From positions 1,798,001-1,862,000 of the forward strand of contig MCFH01000001.1 in the NCBI GenBank assembly GCA_002104945.1: a DNA stretch of 64,000 nucleotides. The letters run 5' to 3'. Position numbers and translations under genes: made by a program. This DNA is from Piromyces finnis finn (lineage: Eukaryota > Fungi > Neocallimastigomycota). How positions within the stretch are numbered: position 1 is the stretch's first letter; every line of letters begins with the position of its first letter. Of the stretch, positions 1 through 55,496 are shown in pieces. The notes below the pieces were generated by a model, which saw only the letters and a program-made list of their open reading frames with translations, made no database searches and had not been told where the DNA came from.

Positions 1-3000
1 TATGTTAGTGTTTAAATTATGTATCATAGAAAGAAAGAAAAAAGTATTGTATTATTAATTAATTTTGAATAATTATCCAAGTTATATAAATATCTTACAC
101 ATATTAATAGTAAAAAGTGTAATTTTATTTCAATACATCAAATTTTTTCACCATCTTTGACTTCTTTCAATAATTTATTATGATAAATCAAAAAAAGAAA
201 AAAAAATGCAATTATTATATAAATAATATTATTTATACAAATATATATATTTTTTTATTCATAAATATAACAGATAACTTAGATCACTAGAAAATTAAAT
301 ATCTTATAAACAAAAGAATTATTATATATTTTATTGTATTTTTTATTTGTATTTGTATATTTTACAATTCTGTAGTTAATCATATATATATTAATTACAT
401 ATAAAGAATTTATTACTATATTATTTATATTTTAGTTATATAAAATTCATACTATATATATATTATAAATTATTTAATTAAATAAACGATGATAAAAAAA
501 AATACAGTAAATAATTAATGCCGTTTTATTTTTATTTGTATTACTATTGACCTTTTTTTTTTATTTTTTATTTAGTATTTAGTAAAAAGCTTTACAAAAT
601 TATATTATTAATATTGTTATTATATATTTTTTTTTAGTCAATATTTAATTATAATCAATTAAAATGTATATACATATTTTAGTATTTTCTATATTATTTT
701 TATATAAAGAAAATATAAATAATCTAATTTTCCCCGCCGCTATTGAATTATTTTAATTTCCAAATTAAAGAAGATATTACAATAATTAATATTAATTTAT
801 CAACTGTTAATGTCATTAAATAATAAATGGAAAATAATCACTTCATCTATATATGCTGCCTAGCGAAGTAAAGTAATTTTAAAATAAAATATATTTATAA
901 AAAGTTTATATAATTTATTTAAGTATTATAACTATTACCATTTTAAACTAAAAAATAAGAAGAGAATTTTTATATAGCAATATATATCCAAAAATATAAT
1001 ACTTTTGAATTAAGGAGTCATTTTAAAAAAAAGTGTATATAACTAAAATATTAAAACATTATAATTTTTTAAGAATAACAATGGATTTTTATATATTAAT
1101 TTATGCCATTCATATTCTTATCATGACTATTTTTTATTTTAATAACTATTATATCCACTTAATATCATAAATAACAATTAAAATTATATATATAAAAAAA
1201 ATTAAAAGGATTTGTTCCTCTTAAAAATAATAATTATAAAATAAATTAATTTGATTATTATAGATATTTATAATTATAAAAAATAGATAATTATAATAAC
1301 TATTATTAACATAAATATTATTTCCCTTATTACTATTATCCATAACATTTGAGCTAATCTTTAGATATGTTATAGTTAGTTCAATTTATTTGTATATTTT
1401 CCAACTTTTGATAATTAATAAATTAATAATAAATAAATAAAAAATAATATTATTAATAATATTTCTTAAAGTCATAAATATGTTTATTTTTCTTTTTCTT
1501 TTTGAATTTCAACAGTTTTAAATTTTTCCTTTTTTTTCTTTGATTTTTACTTTTTTATTTATATCTTTGGAATATTCCTTTTTAATTCAAAAAGATTATT
1601 TTATATTCTAACCCTTTTATGTTTTTAAAATTTAACTTTTTAAAGTTTATTATATATTAAACAATATTAAGTGATCAATATTCAATCAAATTGTGTGAAA
1701 AATAATAATTTCATATGAAAATTTTTATATTTAAAAATAACTAAAATTTTATTTACATTTTAAAAATATTCAAGTGTTCAATAATAAATATAACAAATGA
1801 ACTTGAATAAGTGTAACAAATAATGAAATGCTATTATTTTTACTACTTATAAATAATTTATGACAATATTGCTAATTTCTATTAAAATAAATTATCAATT
1901 ATTTGATGTTCTCAAACATACCAAACATATGAATAAAAACATTAAACATTCAATTTTTATAAGGTGATAATTAAAACTATTTATAATCATTGTTAATAAT
2001 TTTAATCTTAATAGAGCTATCAATAAATTGTATTGGTTGAAAATTATTTTTAATTGAGAATTCTTGAGTGGATTTATTATTATAATTTTTTTTGATATTG
2101 TTTTTAGATTTAATATGAATTAAGGTTTATTATGTATAATAGTTGGATAACTCATTTAAATGAAACATCAAAAGTTTCTTTTATTGAAAGAGAAAAGAGA
2201 TGAAATATACGAAAGTAAGGAACAATGAATTAATTATTTTATAAAACATTTAATAATACTATTACGCATAGAACATATAAATATTATTTATTTTAATTTT
2301 AGAATAGAAGGAATAAAAAAATTCTAGCACTAATTTTTTTTCATAGTAATCCTACATATAAACCAAAGGAAAAATGACTTAATAAATTTCATAGTATAAG
2401 AAATGGACAAATAATAAAGTGATAACGTAATAGTTTTAAATCAGTTTAAACCTAATATTATCCATGTTTTGATTCTATTTTTTTACATCTACTTTTTTTC
2501 TTTGTTACTAAAAAATTCTACATTTTATTTATATATTTCTAGAGTTGTATACAACAATAATTATTAACAGGTTATTGTTTTATATATACAATTATGTACG
2601 CTTATATATTTTTATAATCATGTATAGCAATAATTATCAACAGCTTCTGTTATTGCTTTGCTAATATGATCCATACATAAAAAATAACAAAATGCTCATT
2701 TAAAAAAAACACAATTATCCTATACCTTTTTACCTACCTACCTATTCCATAAACATTAATTTTTATGTGGTGGTGGATAGTAAATTAATTGATTTAAAGT
2801 TTTTTATAAAGACAAGTAAGTTGACTTTATAATATAATAATCATATATATTATACATAAATTATATATTAAAATAATTGAATTAAACAATAAAAAAATTT
2901 AAATTAATTGTCATCATAAAACCTTATTCACTTCTAACGAATTATTATTGAGATTAACTTTTTAATTTAATTTAACCATTTAGAGTAGTTAGCCAATTGA

Positions 3001-15523: not shown

Positions 15524-18500
15524 TTATCCAACTTTTTGGTAATTTCTTTAATAGTAATAAAAAAAAAAAAAAAAGAAATTAATAATTTAATATTTAATAT
15601 CTTAAAATAACATATATTATCAAAAATTAATTATACATACATCTTCTTGATACTTTTAAGTTTTTTAAGGAAAGTTGGTAACACATGTAATTCGTTGTAT
15701 AAAAAGTTACTATAATGTAAATGTAATACAAATAATTTAAAATGTTAGCATTTCCATATTTAAAGATTTCAATATAAAATTTAATAATTTACATTTCTTT
15801 AAGGTTTGATAATTTTATTAATTCAACGGGAATATCTTTTAACAAATTAGTTGAAACATCCCTATAATATATTATGAATTCATATTTTAACTTATAATTA
15901 GTAATTTTTTTTAGAAAATTTTATACGAATATATAAAAGAGCACATACAAGTGTTTCAAATATTTTAAAGAACCAAGGGTTTTTGGTAGAACTTTAATAT
16001 TATTATCATTCGCAATTCTAAAATATTATATATAATGTTTTAATAAAGAAATTTATAATATTAAATATATTTAAATCCCACTATTAATAAATATATAACA
16101 TATATAATATAATTAATAATATATTACAAGCTTTCAAGATATTTCAAATCTCTAATATTATTTGATATTTCAGAAATCCTATTTTTGCTTATATTTCTAA
16201 ATAATATAATATTTAATTGTTAATAAGAAAATTCATTTTATAAACATATGATATATATAAGAACTAATACATACAATGTTTTAAGTTTTGACCATTTACA
16301 AACATTGATATTTATTAATTGATTTGATGACAAATCACTATTTAATTATAAAAAAGGAATATTTTGATTAATATAGAATTTTACTTTATATTATTTAAAT
16401 AGTTTTTATTTACATATATTCTAAATTTGGTAATTCGAATATTTCATTTGGTAACGAATTTAAACAATTATATGATATATCCCTAAAAAATAAATAAAAA
16501 AATAAATAATTAAAATTAATAATTATTCTCATTAATAAAATTTTAAAATTTTCTATTATAGTTACAAATATTTTAAGTGATTTAATTTTTTGATGTTAGG
16601 AGAAATAGATGTTATATTATTAACTTGAATACTCCTATAAAATATAAAGATTATAGATAGATATAGTTTAATTAAATATATATTAAAAATATAGTTAAAT
16701 TATTAAAATAATATTACAATTCTCTTAATTTATAAAGTGTAAATATAGGATCAGGTATATCCACAAAATTATTATATGACAAGTATCTGTAACGATAAAA
16801 TAAATAAATATTTATATAAATAACTTATTATCTATTATATATATATATATAATCAATCTAAACATTATAAAATATTAGAAAATTATACAGTTTTGTAATA
16901 TCTGTAAATTTTTTTAATTCTGAATGGACGATAGATAAATTGTTATTTGAAAGTGACCTTAATATATATATTGAATATTTTAGTCAAATTTTTATAAAAT
17001 ACTTTTTGTTCTTAAATTTATATTATATATTAATAAATTAAAGAAATTTACAAGTATCTCACATTACTAGTCTCTCCTTTTCTAAATTTTATTTCTTTTA
17101 CACGATTACTATGTAAATCCCTATAATTTTTATAATAAGTAAAAATGAAGTTTTTTTTTATTATTAATATACTTCTGGTAATAGTAATATGTATAATTAT
17201 AATAAAATTTATAATGAAATAGATATACAAATTCTGAAGATTTTCCATTTTTCCGATAAATTCTGGAATTTTTGCGATTTCATTTGAATAAAAAATTCTT
17301 TATAATAAATTATAATTTTATATGATATAATTAATTATATCATTAAATTAAATTAATGCTTCATTATATATATTATAAAATATAATACATACATTTCTTC
17401 AAGTTTTTTCAAATTTGAAAGTTCATCAGGAATTTTTGTTAAATTATTACATGCAACATTTCTATTACATTATACGAATTTGATTTTTTATGTTAACTAA
17501 AAATAAATATTTATATGATTTTTATTTTAAAATTTATATATCCTTACAGGATTTTTAAACTAATCAAATTTTTAATATCAGATGAGATTTCAGTTAATTT
17601 ATTATTATGTATATTTCTATTTTTTTGTTATGAATTTTTAAGAAAGGATAATAATATAATATTAATTATTATTATTCAATGAATAATTATTTATGTAATT
17701 AATTTCTCATACAATTCTTCCAAATGAGTTAACTTTAAAATACATGAAGGAACATTATTAAATTTATTATATTGAATAAGTCTAAAAAAAAAATAAATTA
17801 TTATTTTTTGAATGAATAATATTAAAAAATTTAATTAATTAAATTAAATAATATTTCATACATTCTTTTTAGTTTCTTCATTGTTGATATTTCATCTGGC
17901 AAACTTTTTAAATTATTATTTGAGAGTTTTCTAGTTACAAAAAGAAATGGATTTAATATTCAAAACAATATCTAATATATAATAATATATAAAAATTATC
18001 ATACAATTTTTTTAGATTTATCAATTTATTAATTTTACTTGGCAATTTTTCTAAATGATTTCCACCATAGTTTCTAAAATTTAAAAATATTTAAAATATT
18101 AAATTTATATAAATAAAATATAACAGAATATAATTAGTAATTATATATTAATATTTTAAAAATGTTTTATTATATAATATTTACAATTTTTCAAGAGTTG
18201 TAAGTTTTAATATTGTATATGGAAATTCTTTGAAATTATTTTGAGATATATTTCTATTATAAAAATGTTAATAAATATTATACTTATTCAATTTAAATTA
18301 TTTATAATAATTTAAGCATACAAAATTTTTAATGATCTTAATCCTTTAATTTCAGTAACAATTGAATTAAGTTCACAATCACTTAATACTCTGTTTTATA
18401 TACAATAAATATATATATATTATTTAGAAAAAAATTGGGACTTTTCAATTTATATAATATTATATTACAATTTTTCTAATAGAACCAATTGGCCAATTGT

Positions 18501-20804
18501 TTTTGGTAATCGGTAAATTCGATTGTTCGAAAGATTTCTGTTTTTAATCAAAATTAATATAGATATTTAGATGGGTATATTTTTAGATTTTTAATTTATT
18601 ATATTCAATTACTATTATTATATATGATATATTACAGTTCTTTTAAATTTTTTAAAAAGCAGATAGGATTGATTATATTTAATTTACTACTATTCGAATA
18701 ATTACTATTGTTTGTATTTCTATTATTGTTGTTATTGTTATTATTACTACTATTATTATTGTTGCTGTTGTTACTATTATTATTGCTATTATTGTTATTA
18801 TTGTTATTATTGTTATTATTAGGATTATGAATTAATTGAGTAATAAAATTCCTAAAAGCAGCTGAATTCCTTCTTGTAAATGATTGCCTTCTTGTACGTT
18901 CTGGTGGAAATTCTGCATTATTCTCAATAGCACTGGAATTATTTGTAATCCCTTCCTCAGTGCTTCGGTATTCATTTGGATTCAAATCATTCTGATATGT
19001 GTTAGAATGATCTTCAAAATTATCATTATTATTATTATCATCATTATTATTGTTGTTGTTATCATTATCATTATTATTATTAACATCATAATTATTATTA
19101 TTGTTGTTGTTGTTGTTGTTGTTGTTATCATTATCATTATTATTATTATTATTAGCATCATAATTATTATTATTGTTGTTGTTGTTGTTATCATTATCAT
19201 TATTATTATTAGCATCATAATTATTATTATTGTTGTTGTTGTTGTTATCATTATCATTATTATTATTAGCATCATAATTATTATTATTATTATTGTTGTT
19301 GTTGTTGTTATCATTATCATTATTATTATTAACATCATAATTATTATTATTATTGTTGTTGTTATTACTATTTGATTCATCACTAATCAAACTATGAATT
19401 GAATTATTTTCATCATTGAATGAATTAATACTAAGTTCACTACTGGAATTACTTATGCTAACAGCATTATTTCCATTAGTAGCATTTAAAATAACTACTT
19501 CATTAGCATTTTCTTCTTCAACTTGATTCATCATTTCTGGAATATCATTTGTACTATGAATATCTGAATCAAGCTCATTATCAGAATTATTATTGCTACT
19601 TATGTTACTTACACTATCATTTTCATTTTCATTGACATAATTTTCATTGTTATTATCTATACTTTCATTTATTCCATCATTTCCTTCACCTTCTTCTTCC
19701 ACTTCAAATCCTCTATTCTCCTCTTCATTATTATATTCACTTCTATTATTATTGATTGGATCAATAATATTACTATCAATATATAAATCAAGATTATCAG
19801 GAATTGCAAAACCAGAACTAGCATTTTGATATGAAGAACTGTGATTATGTCTATGGTTATGACCATGATGACCATGATTATGTCTTTGATGATTTTGACC
19901 TCTTACTGCACCATTATATTGCCCATTTCCAATAAATTCTTCTATTATATTCCTTTTATGTGAAGAATTTTTTAAACAGTTGTTACTAAAATTTCTATAA
20001 TATATAATTAATTCAAGATTAATATAAAATTCTTCTTATTATATGTATATTAATAAATATAAAAAAAAAAAGGTAATATGAACAATATTTCAAGATTACG
20101 AAAAAGAGATATCTTAGATGATATTCTTTCAATTTTATTGTTGGAAATATTTCTTATAATTTTTAAATAGAATAATTAGTATGCTTTTATAGCATATGCA
20201 TATTTAAGATTATGTATAATAAATTATATTCATACAATTCTTTTAAATCATGTAAGTGTACAATTTCCGAAGGAAAATGTGAATAATTAACTCCTGATAT
20301 GTTTCTATATTTTTATTAATAATTTATAAGTACATTAATTTAGATTTTTAATATATAATATATACATATTAAATTTTCACTATATTACAATGTTTTCAAG
20401 TTTTTAAATTTTGATATTTCATCAGATATTGGTATTTTTTTTGTGATTTTTATTTCTTTTATTTGGTTAATAAATTTCACTTCAAAATAATCAATAAAAT
20501 TCCATATATAATCATTTACTATTAATTTTTCAATTCTTAAATCATAAGTATATTTATTTAATAATATATAACGAGCACATGGATTTTGACGATATAAATA
20601 TGAAATAGAATGATTTAGGCAATTTTTTGTACTTTTATCTGAGAAAAAATAAATTTTGTCTAAAATATTTTTAGTAAACCCATTTTTTAGAATGGGTATA
20701 TCATCGTTTTTAACATATTTTAATAAATCAAATGTCAATTTTGGTTTACTTATATCATTATTATTATTTAATTTATTTCCCTTATTAATTAATTTTATTC
20801 TCAT
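15524..20804 (-). CDS. Cytosolic leucine-rich-repeat protein of ~1079 aa with 24 exons, one LRR per exon; no signal peptide or TM segment seen
   Basis: Exons read by eye, all GT-AG and phase 2: 20804-20389, 20304-20236, 20152-20084, 19994-18636, 18537-18469, 18390-18322, 18253-18185, 18073-18005, 17930-17862, 17781-17713, 17616-17548, 17461-17393, 17297-17229, 17120-17052, 16957-16889, 16786-16718, 16634-16566, 16482-16414, 16337-16275, 16196-16128, 16017-15949, 15861-15793, 15709-15641, 15545-15524. The total is 3240 nt, divisible by 3. Each short exon encodes one xLSxNxLxxLPxxIxxLxxLxxL unit (e.g. NLSNNRIYRLPKTIGQLVLLEKL, KLSNNNLKSLPDEISTMKKLKR). Confidence 0.85.
18710..19380 (-). repeat. 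Coding (AAT/AAC/GAT)-rich low-complexity tract with five YD(A/V)NNNNDNDNn minisatellite units inside the LRR gene
   Basis: The 356-aa ORF shows poly-Asn runs and the recurring unit YD[AV]NNNNDNDNNNNNN five times. The same tract explains the spurious poly-Ile ORFs in the other frames. Confidence 0.85.
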
Positions 20805-21937: not shown

Positions 21938-24900
21938 ATGAACAAATTTAATATGGAGGAAGACCAACAGAAAAATTTAAATTCAACGAATCATGCAAGG
22001 TATATGCCTTTAGAGAATGAAGAAAAAAAGAAAAAACAAAAAATTTTATTACATGAAGATTTAATTATAACTTTAAATGGATATCAGCAAATTCCATATA
22101 AAAAAATCATATACTATGTATTATGTATAATATCATTTGGTATAATATTTTTAATATTTCATTGGTTTCCAAAACTTAAATTAAAATTATTAGGTGAAAT
22201 AATTCCAATAGAAGATGCATCAGAATTATTTATAGAAAATACTTGGAGTAGTGGTGTTGCGCATATTAAAATCAAATGTAATTTTTATCATGGTAAAATT
22301 TCAGATATTTTTCCAAAATATAGTAAGATTAGTGAATATACTAGACAACATAATATAACACCTTCACAAATAGAAAATGCAAATTTAGAACAACAATTTT
22401 ATTTAAAATATTTTAAATATCAATATATTCGTTTTATTTTTAATCCAATTACTTTAAAATATGAACAAATTTCAAATTGGAAAGATCCTAATTGGGTTTC
22501 TATTAAATCAACAATTAATGGTATAGAATCAAACGAAATTTTCAATAAACGTAAACAAATTTTCGGTTCAAATGTCGCTCAAATTCATCAAAAGTCAACA
22601 CTTTCATTTTTAATAGATGAAGTATTACATCCATTTTATATTTTTCAAATATTTTCTATAATATTATGGTGTGCAGAAGATTATTATTATTATGCTTTTT
22701 GTATTTTTGTAATGTCAGTATTTAGTACATATTCTACATTAAAAACATCAAAAGAAAATTTAAAAAAAATATCTGAAATGAGTAAATTTACATGTCCTGT
22801 GGTTGTAGTTCGTAAAGATGAAAATCAGGAAAGCATATATAAACATATTGATTCTGGCGATTTAGTACCAGGAGATGTACTTATTATAGCTCCAGATGAA
22901 TTAGAAATTCTACCATGTGATGCTATCTTATTAAAAGGAGACTGTATTGTAAATGAAAGTATGTTAACAGGTGAAAGTATGCCAATTAATAAAATTCCAA
23001 TTAAAGATGAAGAATTAAAAAATCTTGATTTTGAAACAGATGATGTTGTAGAAAAATTAGGAAATTGTTGTTTCTTTGCTGGTACTAAAATTGTCAGAGT
23101 TAAAGGTGATAAAAATCAGATGCTTAATAATGAAAATTCCTCATCTGCTCAATCACATGAAAATAATAATAATATAAAATCTAAAAGAAAAAGAAATTTA
23201 AAGTATGAAACTAAATCAGCCTATGCATTAGTAATCCGTACAGGATTCAACACAGTAAAGGGATCACTTGTACGTTCAATGCTATTTCCTAAACAAAATT
23301 ATTTCAAATTTTATCGTGATTCATTTAACTTCATTTATGTATTATTTATAATTGCATTGATTGGTTTCTGTGGTTCTCTTTATAATTTTATTAAATACGG
23401 AGTACCAATATCAATTATTATCATAAGAGCTTTGGATTTAATTACGATTGTTGTTCCACCTGCATTACCAGCAACAATGAGCATTGGTACAAGTTTTGCT
23501 ATTTCAAAGTTGAAAGAATTGAACATTTTTTGTATTAGTCCAAATCATGTAATTATTGGAGGTAAATTAAATTTAATTTGTTTTGATAAAACAGGAACAT
23601 TAACAGAAAATGGTCTTTGTGTACATGGAGTTCATTATTTAGAACAATCAAAATCATCAGCCCTCTCTAGTAATAATTCGTTAATAAACTTAGCATCTAA
23701 TAGTTATTCAAGTTTCCAAGGTAATAAATAAATAATAATAAAACTATATATATTTAATATTTGTTATTTATTATCAATCATTGATTTAATTTTGTTTTAT
23801 ATGTACACATTCTTAGATAATATGATATCTAAAGTAAAATTTTCAAAATTAAGTAATCATAAATCAAGAAATAAAGACTTTTTCTCACCATCATATTCAA
23901 CAGTAGTCATGAATTCACCATTATATAATAAACAATTCGTTGTTAATAGCAGTTGTTCAAGTATTAATGATAAAAATAAAGTGGCATTTTCATTTGACGA
24001 TTTAAATGAAGGTTCGCAAAGTCCCAATTTAGAAAAGTTAAATGGTATGTTTTTAAAATAAGAGGTATAAAATTGATGAATTTTAAAAATTTCATTTTAG
24101 GAGAAATAAATAAGTGGAATAACGAAATTTAAAAAAAAAAAATAAATAAATAAAAATAAAAAGAATATGAAATTAAAATTCAAAACTAATTTATTAATTT
24201 ATATTATACAATTAATAATATATTTTTTTAATTTCAATGTTTCCTTTATTCAATTAGAATCATTTGATTACAACGAAATGTCACTTTTAATTTCAAAAAG
24301 ATATATTGATTTGTTACGATTTGCTATGGCAACATGTCACAATTTAAAAGTCGTTAATGGTAAATTAATTGGAGATCCATTAGATGTTGAGATGTTTAAG
24401 TTCATAGATTGGTCAATTCAAGAAAAAGAAGGTACTATTGATGGTTTATCCACTATTGTCAGACCAAAGAATAATGTAGATTTTGAAAAAGAGAAGCGAA
24501 TAAATGAAATAGATTCAGCCAACAGTCCTCGCTCTTTCAAAAAAGATTTAGAAAATATGGAAAAAATATCAAAAATTGCTTCATCAAAATATTTATTTGA
24601 ATTAGGTATTCTTAGAGTATTTGAATTTGCAAGTCATTTAAGAAGAATGAGTGTAATTGTTCGTCGAATGTATTTCGAAGAATCAAATTTAACTGTTTCA
24701 AATTCATTAGAAGTTTTTGTTAAAGGAGCCCCAGAAGTTATTCGTGATATTTGTAAAAATAAAACAAGTAAGTTTATTACTACTTTACATATTATTTAAT
24801 TATTTTTTAATACTATATACTTAAATAAGAAGATTAATTTATTCCGATTTTAAAATATATATAGTACCACTAGAATTCAATCAAAAACTTCATAAGTTAG

Positions 24901-29914: not shown

Positions 29915-31756
29915 ATGAAAACTTCCTCTGCTATTATGATATCTTTAGCCTTAGTTGCTAAAGCTTCTGCTGACTGTTGGTCAGAACGTCTTGGTTATAA
30001 ATGTTGCTCATACTCAACTGAGGTTATCTACACTGATAATGATGGAAAATGGAGTATTGAAAATAATGAATGGTGTGGTATTGTTAGTAACTCAGCATCA
30101 GCAAATTGTTGGGCTTCCAGATTAGGATATCCATGTTGTAAGAATAGTGATGTACCTATTGAAATTGATAGTGATGGTATCTGGGGTATTGAAAATAATG
30201 AATGGTGTGGTATTGTTAGTCATCAACCTAATTATTCGACAACTACAACAAATGCACCAAAGCCAACCCAAAATCCACAAAGACCAAATAAACTTTCAAA
30301 AACAGATATTACTACAGGTGTTAGACAAAAGTATGCTTCAAACTTTAATAATGGTGAATTCCAAGGTTTTGGTACTAGTTTCTGTTGGTGGGCTAATAGA
30401 CTTGGTTATTCCGATATCTTATCTGAAAAGAGTGCTACTGCCTTTTATGATAAAGAAAAAGGTTTAGGTCTTACCATTATTCGTTATAATATTGGTGGTG
30501 GTGATAATCCAACCCACGATCACATTACTAGAACTGATTCAAACATGCCAGGTTATGCTATTAACCCAAGCAACAATGGTGGAAATTATCGCTGGGATTA
30601 CAATTGGAATAGTGATGCTAATCAAAGAAATGCTTTAATGAAGGCATTAGCTAAAAACAGAGATGAAATTATTGTTGAAGGTTTTTCAAACTCTCCACCA
30701 TACTTTATGACTAACTCTGGATGTTCAACTGGTAACTTCAATGCTGGACAAGATAATCTTAGAAGTGATGCCTATCCTGCTTTTGCAAAATATCTCGCTG
30801 ATGTTGCTAAACACTTTAAGCAAAGTTGGGGTGTTACCTTCCAAAGTATTACACCAGTAAACGAACCATTCACCAGTTACTGGGGTGCCAATAGTAACAA
30901 GCAAGAAGGTTGTCACTTTGACCAAGGTAATTCTGAATCCAAAATTATTATTGAACTTTCAAAGGCTCTTAAGCAAAAAGGTCTTGGAGATATGCAAATC
31001 AGTGGTACTGATGAAACCTCTATTGATACACAAATTGATTCCTTTAAAAAATTAAGTAGTGAAGCCCAAAGTATTGTCACTAGACTTGATACCCATACCT
31101 ACGGTGGTTCTAAACGTGATGAATTAAGACTTCTTGCTGAAAATAATAGAAAGAATCTTTGGATGTCTGAAGTTGATGGTTCTGGTACTGAAGGTACTAA
31201 TGCTGGAGAAATGGGAGCTGGTTTATGGCTTTCTAATCGTATTATTACTGATTTGAATGGTCTTAGAGCCTCTGCTTGGATTTTATGGCAAGTTGTTGAT
31301 AATCACATCAGTAAAAATGGTTACAATGGTAAAAAGGATAGTGGTATGGTTGATATTAACAAAGGTTTCTGGGGTGTAGCTGTTGCCAATCATGATACCA
31401 ATGAAATTATTCTCACTCAAAAGTATTATGCCTTTGGTCAATTCAGTAGATACATTCGTCCAGGATACCTTATTATTGGTTGTTACAATAATTCTGTTGC
31501 TGCCTATGATAAGAAGGGTAAAAAACTTGTTATTGTTCAAACCAATACTGCTGGTAGTACCAAAACCATTGATTATGATTTATCTGATTTCCACAGTGTT
31601 GGTTATAAGGTAAGAGTTATTAGAACTAGTGGTTCTATTCAAAATGGTGAACACTGGGCTGAACTTGAACCAATTGTTCCATACGGTAAAGGTTTTAATG
31701 CTGAATTAAAGGCTAATTCCGTCACCACCTTTATTGTTGAAGATGTTGAATGGTAA
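29915..31756 (+). CDS. Secreted cellulosomal glycoside hydrolase: signal peptide, 2 fungal dockerins (CBM10-like), T/P/Q linker, GH30 catalytic domain (resembles the endo-beta-1,6-galactanase-type subfamilies); intronless
   Basis: Signal peptide [19 protein letters not shown]. Two CWxxxLGYxCC...[11 protein letters not shown] domains. GH30 motifs [35 protein letters not shown] (acid/base Glu), LWMSEV (nucleophile Glu), [15 protein letters not shown]. Confidence 0.9.
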
Positions 31757-48900: not shown

Positions 48901-51900
48901 ATGAATATCGGAGACTTACTTTTAGAGTAATAATCTATTTAATATAATTTTAAATAATAAATTTTTGCTAACAAGAAATTATCTTATTCTAATTATTTAT
49001 ATTTAGAGCTTTCATTAAAAATAGGAAATTAGTATTAAAAGAAATTTTGAAAGATATTAATAAAGCACATGATGAGAAAAAATTAATTGACCTTATATCA
49101 AAATATTCTGCGATTCAAAATAATTACGAATTCATTGTGCTTTTATTAAAAAGTAATATTCAATTAAAAAATATTGAATTTTTTTTAAAAACATTTAAAA
49201 AAAATGGTTTAAATATAAAATATTTTTTGAATAATTATTCAGAAATCAACACAAACCTTTACAAAAATCTCATTGAAAATAAAATGAATGATATAATTGA
49301 TTTATTATTAATATATGGTTTAGAAACGAATATATTAATAAGAAACTTACCAGATCATTATAAAAAACATTATAATATAAGATATATCAGTAATTTATTA
49401 TTTAAGGAAATTAACTTAATGAATTTTGATTATATTGAAAAACTACTTTTAAATAATAAAATTATTATAAATATTAAAAATAACAATAATGATATACCAT
49501 TAATATTTTCCATGAAAAGTAACTATGATGAAGATAATACATGTAAAATAATTGATATATTAGTTAAGTATAACCCAAATAAAGATATAACTGATAATAA
49601 TGGTTTAACCGCACTTCATTATGCTTGTCAAAAAAATTATAATACTATCATTCCAAAACTAGTAACTGAAAATAACATAAATATAAAGAATGATAACAAT
49701 GATACTCCATTTATGGTTATGATTAATAAAAGAAATTTTAAGTGTGCTCATACAATATTACTATTAAATTATCATATTGATTTGAATTATTATAATAACA
49801 ATGTAGATTTATTTATTTCATATCTGATTGAAAACAATTGTAAAATAGAATTTATAATGAAGATGATAAAAGAAAATGATAATAGTAATTATATATCTAA
49901 ACTTAAAAAAGAAACTATAATTTGTATATTATTAGAATTAATAAAAAGTCAAAGTTATGAAAATATGAAATTTGTTCTTGATAATTTTCAAGAACTTATC
50001 AATAAGAAATATTCTAATAATAATAATATGACTCTTTTAATGTTTTCAGCTCAATATTGTACAGAAAAACATGAAATTATCGATTTTTTAATTAAAAATA
50101 TGGATAATATAAATGATGTTGACAATGATGGTTTTACAGCCCTTCATTATGCATGTAAATTCAATAATTATATGTCTATACCAAAATTAGTATCAAAAGA
50201 AAATGTAAATATGAAAGAAAAACATTATAAAACTCCCTTAATGATTGCATCTGAAGAAAAAAATTATGATTGTATTACTAGTTTGTTATCTACAGAATAT
50301 GATATTGAAATGAATATATCAGATGATAATAAAGATGATTGGATTATTTATATGATTAAAAATAAAATTAGTAAAAAGAATATTTTTAATATATTATTAG
50401 AAAAAGGTGCAGCAATTTCTTGGAAAAACTTTAAAAAATATATTGATTATATAATTAATAATGAAGCCTTTTTACAATCTATTATAGTTAATAGTTTTAA
50501 TATTTCTAATATTAATAAATCTACGGAATATAAAACAATAAAGTTTCCTATTATTTTTTCGATTCAATATAATTTCGTCAAATTAATGGAAAAATTGGTA
50601 TATTACTATAAGAATATCAACGAAAAAGATGAAAATGGAAAGCCATGTATATTCTATGCAATTGAAAATAAAAATGAGAAATATTTTGAAATATTATTAA
50701 ATAGTAAAAAAATAAATATTGAAGAACAAAATAAAGAAGGGAAAACCGCATTAAGTTATTCATTTGAATTAAAAAAGGAAAAAATATTTAAATCTTTATT
50801 ACAACAGTACATTAATATTTATGAGGCTAATAAAGATAATGAGGAATATTTTAAAAAAATAATTAATTCTAAGTTTTCTCTTCTTAATGCTGAGTTAATG
50901 AAATGCAACAACATTAATTTTACAGAAATTCGAGATATTATGTTACAACTAAAAAATAATGAAGAAAATAAGATTAAAAAAATGAAGGAGTTAAATAATA
51001 ATTTAAAACCTAATCTTTATATTAATGAAAATATTAAAGATAAAATAGATTTAATAAATAATGATAATAATAAAAAATCCAAAAGAATTACTAAAAAGAA
51101 GAAAAATAAGAAAAAAAATAATATTTTAGAAAAAAAGGACAAAGTCTTAAATAACATCTCTAAAGAAACAAATGATTTAAGTAAATATGCTATAGATGAT
51201 ACTAAAAATATATCTACTAGTAATAATGGTAATAATTATTCTACTAATAATGATATTGTAAATAATGATATTAACACAAAAAAATATATTGGAGATTGTA
51301 ATATCGCTGATGATAGTAATAGCAATGATTTTAATGAGGATGTTAATGTTAAAAGTATTACTAGTATTAATTATGAAAATGAAAATATTGAAAACAGTAA
51401 TATCATTAATATTAAGGAAAACATAGATAATTATAATATTATTGATATGAATGAAAATAATAATACTAATAAAAATATTGAAAAAAGTAGTATTGTTAAT
51501 GCTTGTAAAAATGTTGAAAAATATAGGAATACTGAATATAGTGCAATCATCAACAATAATATAAATATCAAAGATATTGTTAATATTATAGAAGAAACAA
51601 AAAATAATAATATTACCAATATCAATAAAGAAATTGAAAGTATCAATGATAATATCGAGAATGATATTATCAATATTGATAAAAAAATTGAAAGTATTAA
51701 TGATAATAATAATATTAATATCGATAAAAAAATTGATAATATTAATGATTTTAATGATGAAATCGAAAACAAAGAAATAAAAATTAATAATACTGAATAT
51801 TGTACTGCTATTGAAAATAATGATATTTATGAAAGAACTTTTACAGAAGAAATGGAATATAATAATACAGAATATTTCACTGTAACTGAAAATAATGAAA

Positions 51901-54900
51901 ATTTTAAAAATAATGAAATAGTAAAAATAAATAAAATTGAAAATAGTATTATTACAGAAAGTATAGAAGATTATATTACCAATACTACTATTGAAAATGA
52001 TAATACAATAACTGACATTAAAGAAATTCCAAAAAATGTTAATATCACAGATATAAATGAAATTATGATATTTGAAAATAGAATTACTGAAAAAGAAAAT
52101 GAATATGATAGTAATAATAACGAAGTATTTGTCAAAGAAGAAGAAAATAGTAATGACAAAGGAAATTTCAAAAATGAAGATTATAAAATATCATCTATTA
52201 ATATTTCCAATTCAAGTGATGAATATGAAATATTAGAAATGGCATGTATTATAGGAAATAAAATAATTATTGAATCATTAATAAAAACATATTTATTTGA
52301 TGTAAATAAAAAAATTGGTGAGTATCAACAAACTCCTTTAATGTTACTAATTTCTAATAATAATTATAATTCAGTTGATTTATTATTACATAATGGTTCA
52401 AATGTCAATATAAAAGATATCTACGGAAACACACCTTTTATCTATATGTTAAAACATAATTTAATAAATACAGAAATTTACAAATCATTAATTAATCATG
52501 GAGCTTATATTGACTATGAATTGTTTAAAAATAATGAATTTTTAAACAATATTATAAAAAACAAAGAATTTATTAAATTATATATAGAAAAAAAAATAAA
52601 GGTGAAATATGATGGAAAATGCAAAGCTTTAGTTATCAATGATCCATTGACCTTTGCAGTCAAATTGGATAATTATGATTTTGTTAATTCTTTATTTGAT
52701 AATGACATTAAATGTGATGAACTATTTAAATCCGTTGATAATCCATTGGAAATTGTAAATGAAAATAGAAATAAAAATATATCCCAATTATTATTTAAAC
52801 ATTATAAAGATGAAGCTCTTAATAATGAAAATATTAAAAATTCTTACAGTGATAGTGATGATAGTTATTATTATGATAGTGATGATAGTTATTTTTCACC
52901 AGTAATAAATAAAAAAATTAATTATGAAAACTATCAAGGAATTAATTATCCTTCCTATAACGAAATTCCTGAAGAAGAAAATGACGAATCAGAATTAATT
53001 ATAGATTTTAAAGAAAATTATGATTACGATGTATTTAATAATAAAGATAATTATGAATATCCAGAATTACATTATGCTTTTATTAATAATAAAAGTGATA
53101 TAGTTAAGATAATGATTCAATATAATGAATATGTAAAATATATAAATGAGCCATTTGGGGAATATCAATTTACCCCAATAATGATATCAATTTTTTTAGA
53201 AAATTATGATATTGCTCAATTTATACTTGAAAATGTAGAATTTATAAATGTAAATAATAGGGATATATATAAAAATACACCATTTATGTTTATGTTAAAA
53301 TATAATAAAGTTAATGAAGATATTTACAATTCATTAATTAAAAGAGAAGCCTTTGTAGATATAAATCTCTTTAAAAATAAAATGTTCATACATCAAATAT
53401 GCAATAATGAAATTTTTATTAAGCTTTTATTAGATAAAAAAATTAGAGTTTCTTATGATGAAACAAGTAATAAAATTTATGTAATTGAACAGCCATTGAT
53501 CTTTGCTATACATTTCAATGCTACAGAATTAATTGATAAATTAATCGATAAAAAAGCTGATATTAATGAATTATCTGTTAATGGAATTACACCATTAATT
53601 CAGGCTATTGAAAATAATAATATTAATATTGTAAAGAAATTGATTGATAATAATGTAGACTTAATGAGGCCAAGTTTTGATGGAAGAACTCCTTTAGAAA
53701 TAGCGAAAACCAAACAATATTATAAAATTGCTGAAATTATTGAACATAATCAAGTATATAATTATGGTTTATTTAATCAAAATTATCGAGATTATCATTA
53801 CAATAATATATCATATAATGCTTTTCCTAATATGAATTATAATTATTTTGATACTTATAATGAACAATACAACAATAACAATATATTAGAAAAGCATAGT
53901 AAATTATTGTTAAGAGCTATTAGAAAGGATTCGATAAAAAAAGCAAAAGATATAATTCAGCTTGATAATCGTATTGTTAATTTTGAAAATAAAAAAGGTA
54001 TTACCCCATTATTATATGCTATTCATTTAAATAAATTAAATATTATTGATTTATTAATATCTTTTCAAGCTAATGTTGATGCCAAAAATAAAAATAGTCT
54101 TTCACCTTTAAATTATGCGCTTAAAAAGGGAAATAAGGATATAATAACAATTCTTATTAGACAAAGTCAAAGATATGTTAATAATAAAGAATATTCTCAA
54201 ATGATAAATGAAGAACTTCAAATATTTAATAATAATTTTATTATTAAATATATTGTAAATAATAAAAATATAACTACAAAAAAATTGGAAAAATGTAAAA
54301 ATAAAATTAATGAAATAAAAATTAACCTATCAAAACAATCAACTTTTTTTAATAGTCTTAACAAAAAACACATGAGCTTTTCTAATAAATACAACAGTCT
54401 TGTAGATTATAATGTAAATAATAATTATTATATCAATAATATCAATCCAGATATTGATATAAACTATTATAATGACAATATTTCAAGTTGTTCCAGTAAA
54501 TATACTGATTTAGATATTAATTATCAAAATAGTAAAAACTCTTATAGCAGCTATAGTAATAATAGTAAAGATACATTGGATAAAAATAATTTTATTGATA
54601 TGGATATAAAATTATTAAAATGTATTCAAAGAGGAAATTATATAGAAGCTGAAAGAAAAATTAGGAATAATTTTAATTGCATTAATGAAAAAAGTGAATT
54701 ATTCAATAATGATAATATAGTAACATATTTTGTAAAAAATCCAAAATTCTACAATGAAGATTTCTTCGAATTCTTAATCAACAGTGGTGGTTATTTCACA
54801 TCAAATGTTTTTATAAATGAAATAATTTACAACAAAAAGTTTATTGAATTACTTTTAAATAAAAAATTTAAAATAAAAAAAAATAATGAAGAAAAAATTG

Positions 54901-55496
54901 AAGTAATTGATAAACCATTACACTATATAATCCAGTTAAAAAAGCATGAATATTTAGAGAGCTTACTTAAAGATAATGAATTAAAAGATAAAATTACTGA
55001 AGAAGAATCTTTAATCAAATATATAATAAAAGATATGAAAGATATTAATGCATTAAATATTTTATTAAATTATAGAAGAAATTTCTTTAAAAAAGATAAA
55101 TTTGGTAAAACCCCAATTATGTATGCTGTTGAAAGTAGCAATAAATATATCATTAATATATTATTACAAAATAAATTTAATATTGATGACACAGATAAAA
55201 ATGGTGAAACTGCCTTATTTTATGCTGTTAGAAGCAAAAAATTTGACATAATTAAATATTTAATAGAAAAAGGAACAAATGTTGAAATTAAAAATAAAGA
55301 ATATAAAAATATTTTATTTCTAGCAGTTGAATCTGAAAAGGTTCGTATTGTGGAGTATTTATTAAATAAAGTTAAAGAAAATAATTCCTTTGATATTAAT
55401 AATCGATCTCTTCTTTATTATGCAAATAAAACCAAGAAGAAGAATATTATTAATCATATTAAAAATAAAGGAATAACAAAAGAAAGTTGTATATAA
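48901..55496 (+). CDS. Giant ankyrin-repeat protein (~2170 aa), nearly all in one 6.4-kb exon
   Basis: The 2149-aa ORF has many ANK units (GLTALHYAC, GFTALHYAC, KTPLMIA, GITPLIQA, GRTPLEIA, GITPLLYA, GKTPIMYA, GETALFYA) separated by Asn-rich linkers. The ORF-track start is a TTG. A likely first exon MNIGDLLLE at 48901 (GA|GTAATA...TTAG|A) restores an ATG; that start is inferred. Confidence 0.85.

Follow-up and report, generated by a model that had tools for sequence, protein, structure and literature searches.

A window of 64,000 nucleotides (nt) of the Piromyces finnis genome (contig MCFH01000001.1, positions 1,798,001 to 1,862,000) was analyzed, and a predicted gene of 24 exons and 23 introns was found on its minus strand, between positions 20804 and 15524. 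The gene encodes leucine-rich repeats (LRRs), most of them on separate micro-exons. The model was obtained by chaining open-frame intervals of the type AG-exon-GT, for which the minus strand was scanned. In coding order, the exons measured 416 nt, twice 69 nt, 1359 nt, 14 times 69 nt, 63 nt, four times 69 nt, and 22 nt, giving a coding sequence of 3240 nt and a product of 1079 residues. Thus, 20 exons were 69 nt long and a single one 63 nt, exactly the count given in a preliminary description of this DNA. The same description had counted 24 junctions and a periodicity of approximately 160-170 nt; the junctions exist in our model, but their number is 23, and the series is regular, but the mean spacing of exon starts in the array is slightly lower (157 nt; range, 137-180 nt).

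Each small exon consisted of 1 nt, 22 codons (20 in the 63-nt exon), and 2 nt, so both flanking introns are in phase 2. All 23 introns started with GT, ended with AG, and were in phase 2, with lengths of 68-111 nt (median, 86 nt). The codon split by the intron always specified Leu or Ile (TTA, 10; TTG, 5; CTA, 3; ATA, 3; ATT, 2) and lay at the second Leu of LxxLxLxxN (in the notation xxLxLxx, the first Leu). One 23-residue LRR per exon, with the intron at the same codon, was therefore found throughout, as had been proposed. The join of any exon with any other, combining TT, CT, or AT with A, G, or T, would result in Leu, Ile, Phe, or Met at this core position. The proposal that exons could be skipped or duplicated without loss of frame was likewise borne out, all LRR exons being symmetric and every join codon hydrophobic. 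Retention of an intron would introduce an in-frame stop in 22 of the 23 cases. For exon 24, the acceptor chosen lies behind a long T-tract and yields an intron of 95 nt; an alternative acceptor (exon start at 15600) yields an intron of 40 nt and a tail of two residues. The former was preferred because of the intron lengths in this gene.

The array of micro-exons was far beyond chance (Table 1). Within the window, a stringent nucleotide pattern (AG, six NTN codons, AAY, NT, GT) was found in 15 of the 20 69-nt exons and at no other place, compared with 0.02 matches per 64 kilobases (kb) in composition-matched shuffles. At the frequency of stop triplets in the introns (0.108), the probability of 21 open frames of 22 codons was approximately 1e-23. 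The guanine-plus-cytosine (GC) content was 21.8% in the exons and 10.9% in the introns of the gene, within a window that is extremely AT-rich (GC content of 11-36% per kb).

Table 1. Exons of the predicted LRR gene, in coding order (window coordinates), with the observations on which each is based. Scan, AG-exon-GT interval scan; alignment, peptide alignment of the small exons; profile, genome search with the exon profile; pattern, strict DNA pattern; E, expectation value.
Exon	Coordinates	Strand	Content	Observations
1, 416 nt	20389..20804	-	orphan N-terminal domain and first LRR	ATG at 20804; 138 codons + 2 nt; donor TT/GTAA
2, 69 nt	20236..20304	-	one LRR	phase 2 on both sides; scan, alignment, profile
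3, 69 nt	20084..20152	-	one LRR	phase 2 on both sides; scan, alignment, pattern
4, 1359 nt	18636..19994	-	LRR start, island, LRR end	symmetric phase 2; open frame of 467 codons
5, 69 nt	18469..18537	-	one LRR	scan, alignment, profile, pattern
6, 69 nt	18322..18390	-	one LRR, Asn replaced by Cys	scan, alignment
7, 69 nt	18185..18253	-	one LRR	scan, alignment, profile, pattern
8, 69 nt	18005..18073	-	one LRR	scan, alignment
9, 69 nt	17862..17930	-	one LRR	scan, pattern; Pfam LRR_4, E = 0.016 for the exon alone
10, 69 nt	17713..17781	-	one LRR	scan, alignment, profile, pattern
11, 69 nt	17548..17616	-	one LRR	scan, alignment, pattern
12, 69 nt	17393..17461	-	one LRR	scan, profile, pattern; Pfam LRR_4, E = 0.034
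13, 69 nt	17229..17297	-	one LRR	scan, alignment, pattern
14, 69 nt	17052..17120	-	most degenerate LRR	scan, alignment
15, 69 nt	16889..16957	-	one LRR	scan, alignment, pattern
16, 69 nt	16718..16786	-	one LRR	scan, alignment, profile, pattern
17, 69 nt	16566..16634	-	one LRR	scan, alignment, pattern
18, 69 nt	16414..16482	-	one LRR	scan, profile, pattern; Pfam LRR_8, E = 0.011
19, 63 nt	16275..16337	-	one LRR, two residues shorter	phase 2 on both sides; scan, alignment
20, 69 nt	16128..16196	-	one LRR	scan, alignment, pattern
21, 69 nt	15949..16017	-	one LRR	scan, alignment
22, 69 nt	15793..15861	-	one LRR	scan, alignment, profile, pattern
23, 69 nt	15641..15709	-	last LRR	scan, alignment, profile, pattern
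24, 22 nt	15524..15545	-	..NYQKVG, then TAA	read from the sequence; intron-length argument

The peptides of the 21 small exons aligned to the consensus xLSxNxLxxLPxxIxxLxxLxx, with a period of 23 residues, Asn in at least 90% of the rows, and hydrophobic residues at positions 2, 7, 10, 14, 17, and 20. Protein searches were performed exon by exon rather than on the joined product. Single exons scored 13-16 bits against the Pfam LRR models (gathering cut-off, 27 bits), and weak LRR_4 and LRR_8 scores are to be expected for peptides of 22 residues. The profile of the 21 exons matched 141 sequences of the PDB at E ≤ 0.001. The best match was Leptospira LIC11098 (2.5e-60), and LRRD1 (4.7e-37), SHOC2 (1.5e-27), and RSU1 (7.6e-20) were also found. 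By this profile, the repeats are assigned to the 23-residue SHOC2/RSU1-type class of LRRs, which occurs in intracellular eukaryotic scaffold proteins. SHOC2, RSU1, and LRRD1 carry the best-matching repeat class among the eukaryotic solved structures and, like the predicted product, are soluble and consist almost wholly of LRRs; they are interaction scaffolds. Nothing was detectably similar beyond the repeats, however, and the N-terminal domain and the island of exon 4 have no counterpart in these proteins. A fungal LRR adenylate cyclase (Cyr1) was ruled out, because Pfam detected no PP2C or cyclase catalytic domain in any exon and the model ends 7 codons past the last LRR.

Exon 1 was single-copy in the genome and matched no Pfam family. 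When it was compared with 1.84 billion representative proteins, one cluster of relatives was obtained; a word search gave six relatives of 132-144 residues with 69-80% identity, which appear to be from anaerobic fungi. Exon 1 and the six relatives shared their start and their end, and residues 37-136 were almost invariant. All six relatives ended in ..TL, as results from reading through the TT/GTAA donor into the intron. The alignment and the shared end point to constraint on this domain in related anaerobic fungi and to a first intron in the same place. The only named relative was OUM58255.1 ("hypothetical protein PIROE2DRAFT_16525 [Piromyces sp. E2]", 138 residues), which is likely a mis-annotation of a 24-exon gene, with the counterpart of exon 1 modeled alone and the micro-exons missed. 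The preliminary description had called the gene hidden, and this was supported in part: the sister species Piromyces sp. E2 annotates exon 1 alone, and no public gene model holding exon 1 of the present genome was found in two protein libraries. Profile searches of the PDB with the N-terminal domain, including a profile of seven sequences, gave no matches, and AlphaFold2 models of the domain reached a predicted local distance difference test (pLDDT) score of 33 with two sequences and 38 with seven. No orthologous DNA of the gene was found in two metagenome scans.

Exon 4 started as an LRR (NFSNNCLKN), continued with an island of approximately 420 residues, and ended as an LRR (..ICFLKNLKE). 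The island was 41% Asn, with one His-rich stretch and acidic stretches, and contained a tandem repeat of 5.5 copies of a 63-nt unit (19022-19363). Exon 4 gave nothing above threshold in Pfam, and its residues 1-210 had no relatives of 249-791 residues. A nonrepetitive basic stretch of the island (18840-18905, minus strand; ..PPERTRRQSFTRRNSAAFRNF..) included two RRxS motifs; these resemble sites of basophilic kinases and might regulate the island. The first 25 residues of the product had a mean hydropathy of -0.9 and no signal peptide, and neither a hydrophobic N-terminus nor a membrane-spanning segment was present in the two large exons (exons 1 and 4). For this reason, the product is probably intracellular, in agreement with the cytosolic location proposed earlier.

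When the exon profile was run against the whole genome, 1057 candidates were obtained, of which 150 were scored as matches. The matches were of two kinds, namely long intron-free frames and lone repeats in frames of 24-60 codons. The fetched loci of the latter kind showed exons of 69 nt composed of 1 nt, 22 codons, and 2 nt, with TT/A junctions and GT-AG introns, and the same structure was present in the fetched pieces L004, L005, L008/L013, L003/L018/L021, and L023/L024. Exons of 69 or 72 nt in phase 2, each with one LRR, were found at five or more loci outside the window (C161, C191, C68, C184, and C178, the latter with two copies), a number that is a lower bound from the exon-profile search. 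Thus, the paralogs with the same phase-2 structure whose search had been suggested do exist. One-repeat exons numbered at least 13 in C161, 12 in C191, 8 in C68, and at least 31 in C184. The paralogs at C191:259-264 kb, C68:593-596 kb, C161:228-231 kb, and C184:175-182 kb shared with the window gene the exon unit of 69 nt (72 nt in part of C184), phase-2 introns (approximately 75-145 nt), the TT/A Leu junction codon, and the repeat consensus. Only the window gene combined the lack of a signal peptide with a single-copy N-terminal domain and the 420-residue island.

The paralog at C191:259441-264129 (L008:683-1267, minus strand; L013:1810-2037, minus strand) consisted of a signal-peptide exon, 12 exons of 69 nt, and an exon with four Chitin_bind_1 (CBM18) modules. 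The paralog at C68:593116-596181 (L004:3-287 and 2029-2223, minus strand) was similarly composed of a signal-peptide exon, eight exons of 69 nt, and an exon with at least two Chitin_bind_1 (CBM18) modules. Both are predicted to be secreted LRR-chitin-binding genes, with the signal peptide at the start and the chitin-binding modules at the end, whereas the window gene has neither. Membership of the window gene in this subfamily was rejected, given that it has no signal peptide and no Pfam match in exons 1 and 4. At C184:175292-182453 (minus strand; L018, L021, and L003), exons of 69 nt were mixed with exons of 72 nt encoding plant-type repeats (NxLSGSIPxxIGNL; 24-residue LSGSIP repeats), and the last exon was Cys-rich (L018:704-1027). 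The intron-free class, with the same 23-residue repeat in frames of 700-1150 codons, was located at C57:760-773 kb, C163:116-126 kb, C189:577-583 kb, C195:156-201 kb, and C178:1273-1276 kb. Because both kinds were among the profile matches, intron-free LRR genes and LRR genes with one intron per repeat coexist in this genome. In addition, C75:14012-15437, C93:3060-4479, and C177:37543-38968 did not differ in their series of exon-sized LRR matches or in the scores of these matches; a single micro-exon LRR gene is probably present there in near-identical copies, or the loci are duplicates of the assembly.

The symmetry of the exons had led to the proposal of a diversifiable recognition protein, in which exons would be alternatively skipped, or often gained, lost, and swapped between genes, resulting in many LRR variants. 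The uniform phase, the hydrophobic join codons, and the existence of a similarly built gene family are consistent with it. Some arrays of this family also looked younger: the nucleotide identity among exons was 73% in C184, 65% in C68, and 62% in C191, compared with 49% in the window gene (maximum, 68%), and, compared with the window gene, the C184 array looks much more homogeneous, or younger. The strong divergence of the repeats noted earlier was real and was the greatest observed at the protein level, with a mean amino-acid identity of 28% in the window gene and 30-52% in C161, C191, and C68 (C184 was compared at the nucleotide level only). Adjacent exons of the window gene were no more alike than distant ones. 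The introns were unrelated to each other (mean local alignment score, 27.9; shuffled introns, 28.0), and, at 68-111 nt, they are too short to hide relic exons of the kind seen in Ectocarpus (PMC3341825). No diagonal or co-linearity was found between the window exons and the ordered exons of C161, C191, and C68, and hence no signal of exchange with these paralogs. The low nucleotide identity of its exons (49%) and the unrelated introns show that the array is old. The divergence, the unrelated introns, the lack of co-linearity, and the conserved single-copy exon 1 argue against rapid shuffling at this locus, and the architecture itself is family-wide. Furthermore, splicing in short-intron fungi is intron-defined, and its variants are mostly retained introns, exon skipping being rare. 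Precedents do exist in other lineages, as a proposal for the brown-algal LRR-ROCO genes (PMC3341825, PMC11378527) and, for a single skipped exon, in human NLRP3 (PMC6642158). In view of the above, we regard a rapidly shuffled or diversifiable receptor as unlikely at this locus.

We consider it very probable that the window gene is an intact and conserved gene for a soluble, probably intracellular LRR protein of approximately 1079 residues, which most likely functions as an interaction scaffold or adaptor and whose exon array is old and fixed. The protein would consist of an N-terminal domain of approximately 110 residues, approximately 23 LRRs of the 23-residue class in one solenoid, and a short tail, with the Asn-rich, His-containing, and acidic island of approximately 420 residues looped out of the fourth repeat as a disordered segment. 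It would most likely act in protein-protein interactions. On this reading, the array arose when a unit of one exon and its intron was duplicated in tandem in an ancestral LRR gene; a whole family of LRR genes in this genome would be built on that unit, and the exon design would be a historical trace.

Several points weigh against this interpretation. The splice junctions were predicted from the DNA letters, and the model is at its least certain in exon 24. The N-terminal domain is without a recognizable family or fold. The proposed conservation among anaerobic fungi comes from the comparison of exon 1, the scaffold or adaptor function was deduced from the repeat class alone, and constitutive splicing of the array, although most likely, is an assumed step.

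With the same exon array, a more specific function can be imagined, namely that of a lineage-specific intracellular LRR sensor of anaerobic gut fungi. The orphan domain and the Asn/His-rich island with its RRxS motifs would be parts of this sensor, regulated skipping of the symmetric exons would vary its binding surface, and such micro-exon genes would be systematically missed by public annotation, of which the record of exon 1 alone in Piromyces sp. E2 would be an example. We judge this to be improbable, to about the same degree as the diversifiable receptor.

Even less probable is an F-box/LRR substrate receptor of an SCF ubiquitin ligase, with the N-terminal domain as a divergent F-box. This possibility was suggested by a language-model search for look-alikes, which returned clusters of F-box and LRR proteins with weak scores (0.86-0.90; recognition below the reliability mark), and by ILDKIYFFSDKSTKNCLNHSIS in the N-terminal domain, which by eye loosely resembles the F-box core. 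However, neither exon 1 nor its relative matched the Pfam F-box even at E = 10, and a scan of the genome with PF12937 (E up to 10) gave 56 places, none of them in the LRR gene. The seven-sequence profile matched nothing in the PDB, and the structure models had low pLDDT scores (33-38), so a very remote F-box keeps a small probability. The LRRs of FBXL proteins are normally of the Cys type and 26 residues long, unlike the 23-residue class found here. With the weak language-model match as the sole lead, the F-box reading of exon 1 was rejected on the Pfam and PF12937 results. Finally, a decaying or unexpressed relic of the LRR family would fit the missing public model, the very degenerate repeat of exon 14, and the low complexity of the island, but it is the least credible alternative and very hard to reconcile with 24 of 24 open exons bounded by intact GT-AG sites (chance of approximately 1e-23), a GC content twice as high in exons as in introns, and an N-terminal domain strongly constrained across seven sequences.

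The gene model of a fixed array encoding an intracellular LRR protein can be compared with known systems. The earlier statement that one-repeat exons have precedents in animals and plants was correct, such exons being documented in plants, brown algae, ciliates, and vertebrates. In rice LRR-kinase genes, phase-2 introns split the first Leu of xxLxLxx and one-repeat exons are 72 nt long (also 69 nt, 75 nt, and others), a structure explained by exon duplication (PMC3050792). Intron position and phase were the same in the window gene. The rice proteins, however, have extracellular 24-residue LRRs, a membrane span, and a kinase, whereas the window gene is fungal and predicts a soluble protein with 23-residue repeats and no kinase. 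Brown-algal LRR-ROCO genes of Ectocarpus and Saccharina have phase-2 exons of 72 nt, with evidence of shuffling and splicing variants (PMC3341825, PMC11378527). They resemble the window gene in having one LRR per symmetric phase-2 exon and LRR-only relatives in the genome, and they differ in exon length and in the repeat frame (GxxPxxLxxxxxLxxLxLxxNxLx per exon). Their exons are highly similar to each other, relic exons lie in the introns (Ectocarpus, PMC3341825), and a ROC-COR module is attached; none of these features was present in the window gene. An exon-shuffling immune receptor of the brown-algal type was accordingly rejected as a candidate, since the exons are dissimilar, the introns are unrelated, and no Pfam domain was found in the non-LRR exons.

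Tetrahymena has tens of thousands of phase-2 LRR exons of 90 nt, interpreted as a clonal exon expansion (PMC6564038). The tandem exons of equal length, the extreme phase-2 bias, and the junction amino acid are shared with the window gene. The differences are the exon length, the number of exons, and the inclusion of young, species-specific expansions with shared nucleotide identity, as opposed to a single, old, and conserved gene. In human NLR genes, exonic modularity is strict (PMC6642158). Thus, the design of one LRR per symmetric phase-2 exon is not new, and dozens of exons at other places of the present genome follow it. A literature search found no published account of it in Neocallimastigomycota.

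The window gene adds to the family a probably intracellular member with an orphan and strongly conserved N-terminal domain. The gene is also a clear case of annotation missing a micro-exon gene with 23 introns, the sister-species record being limited to exon 1, and it is useful for the re-annotation of Neocallimastigomycota genomes. In a survey of 101 eukaryotic genomes, fungi almost entirely lacked LRR receptors (PMC2939053), whereas the present data support a sizeable LRR repertoire in early-diverging gut fungi. They contain no evidence for a diversity-generating system.

Three other genes of the window were identified. A gene for a P5-type cation ATPase (21938-24796, plus strand), with the domains P5-ATPase, E1-E2_ATPase, and Cation_ATPase in at least two open frames, adjoins the 5′ end of the LRR gene. 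A frame of 613 codons (29915-31753, plus strand) combines a glycoside hydrolase domain of the GH30 type with two CBM10 dockerin modules; such cellulosome-type enzymes are typical of anaerobic gut fungi. Finally, an uninterrupted frame of 2149 codons (49047-55493, plus strand) is densely filled with ankyrin repeats (Ank_2, 3.5e-96, 11 stretches), in contrast to the micro-exon structure of the LRR gene.

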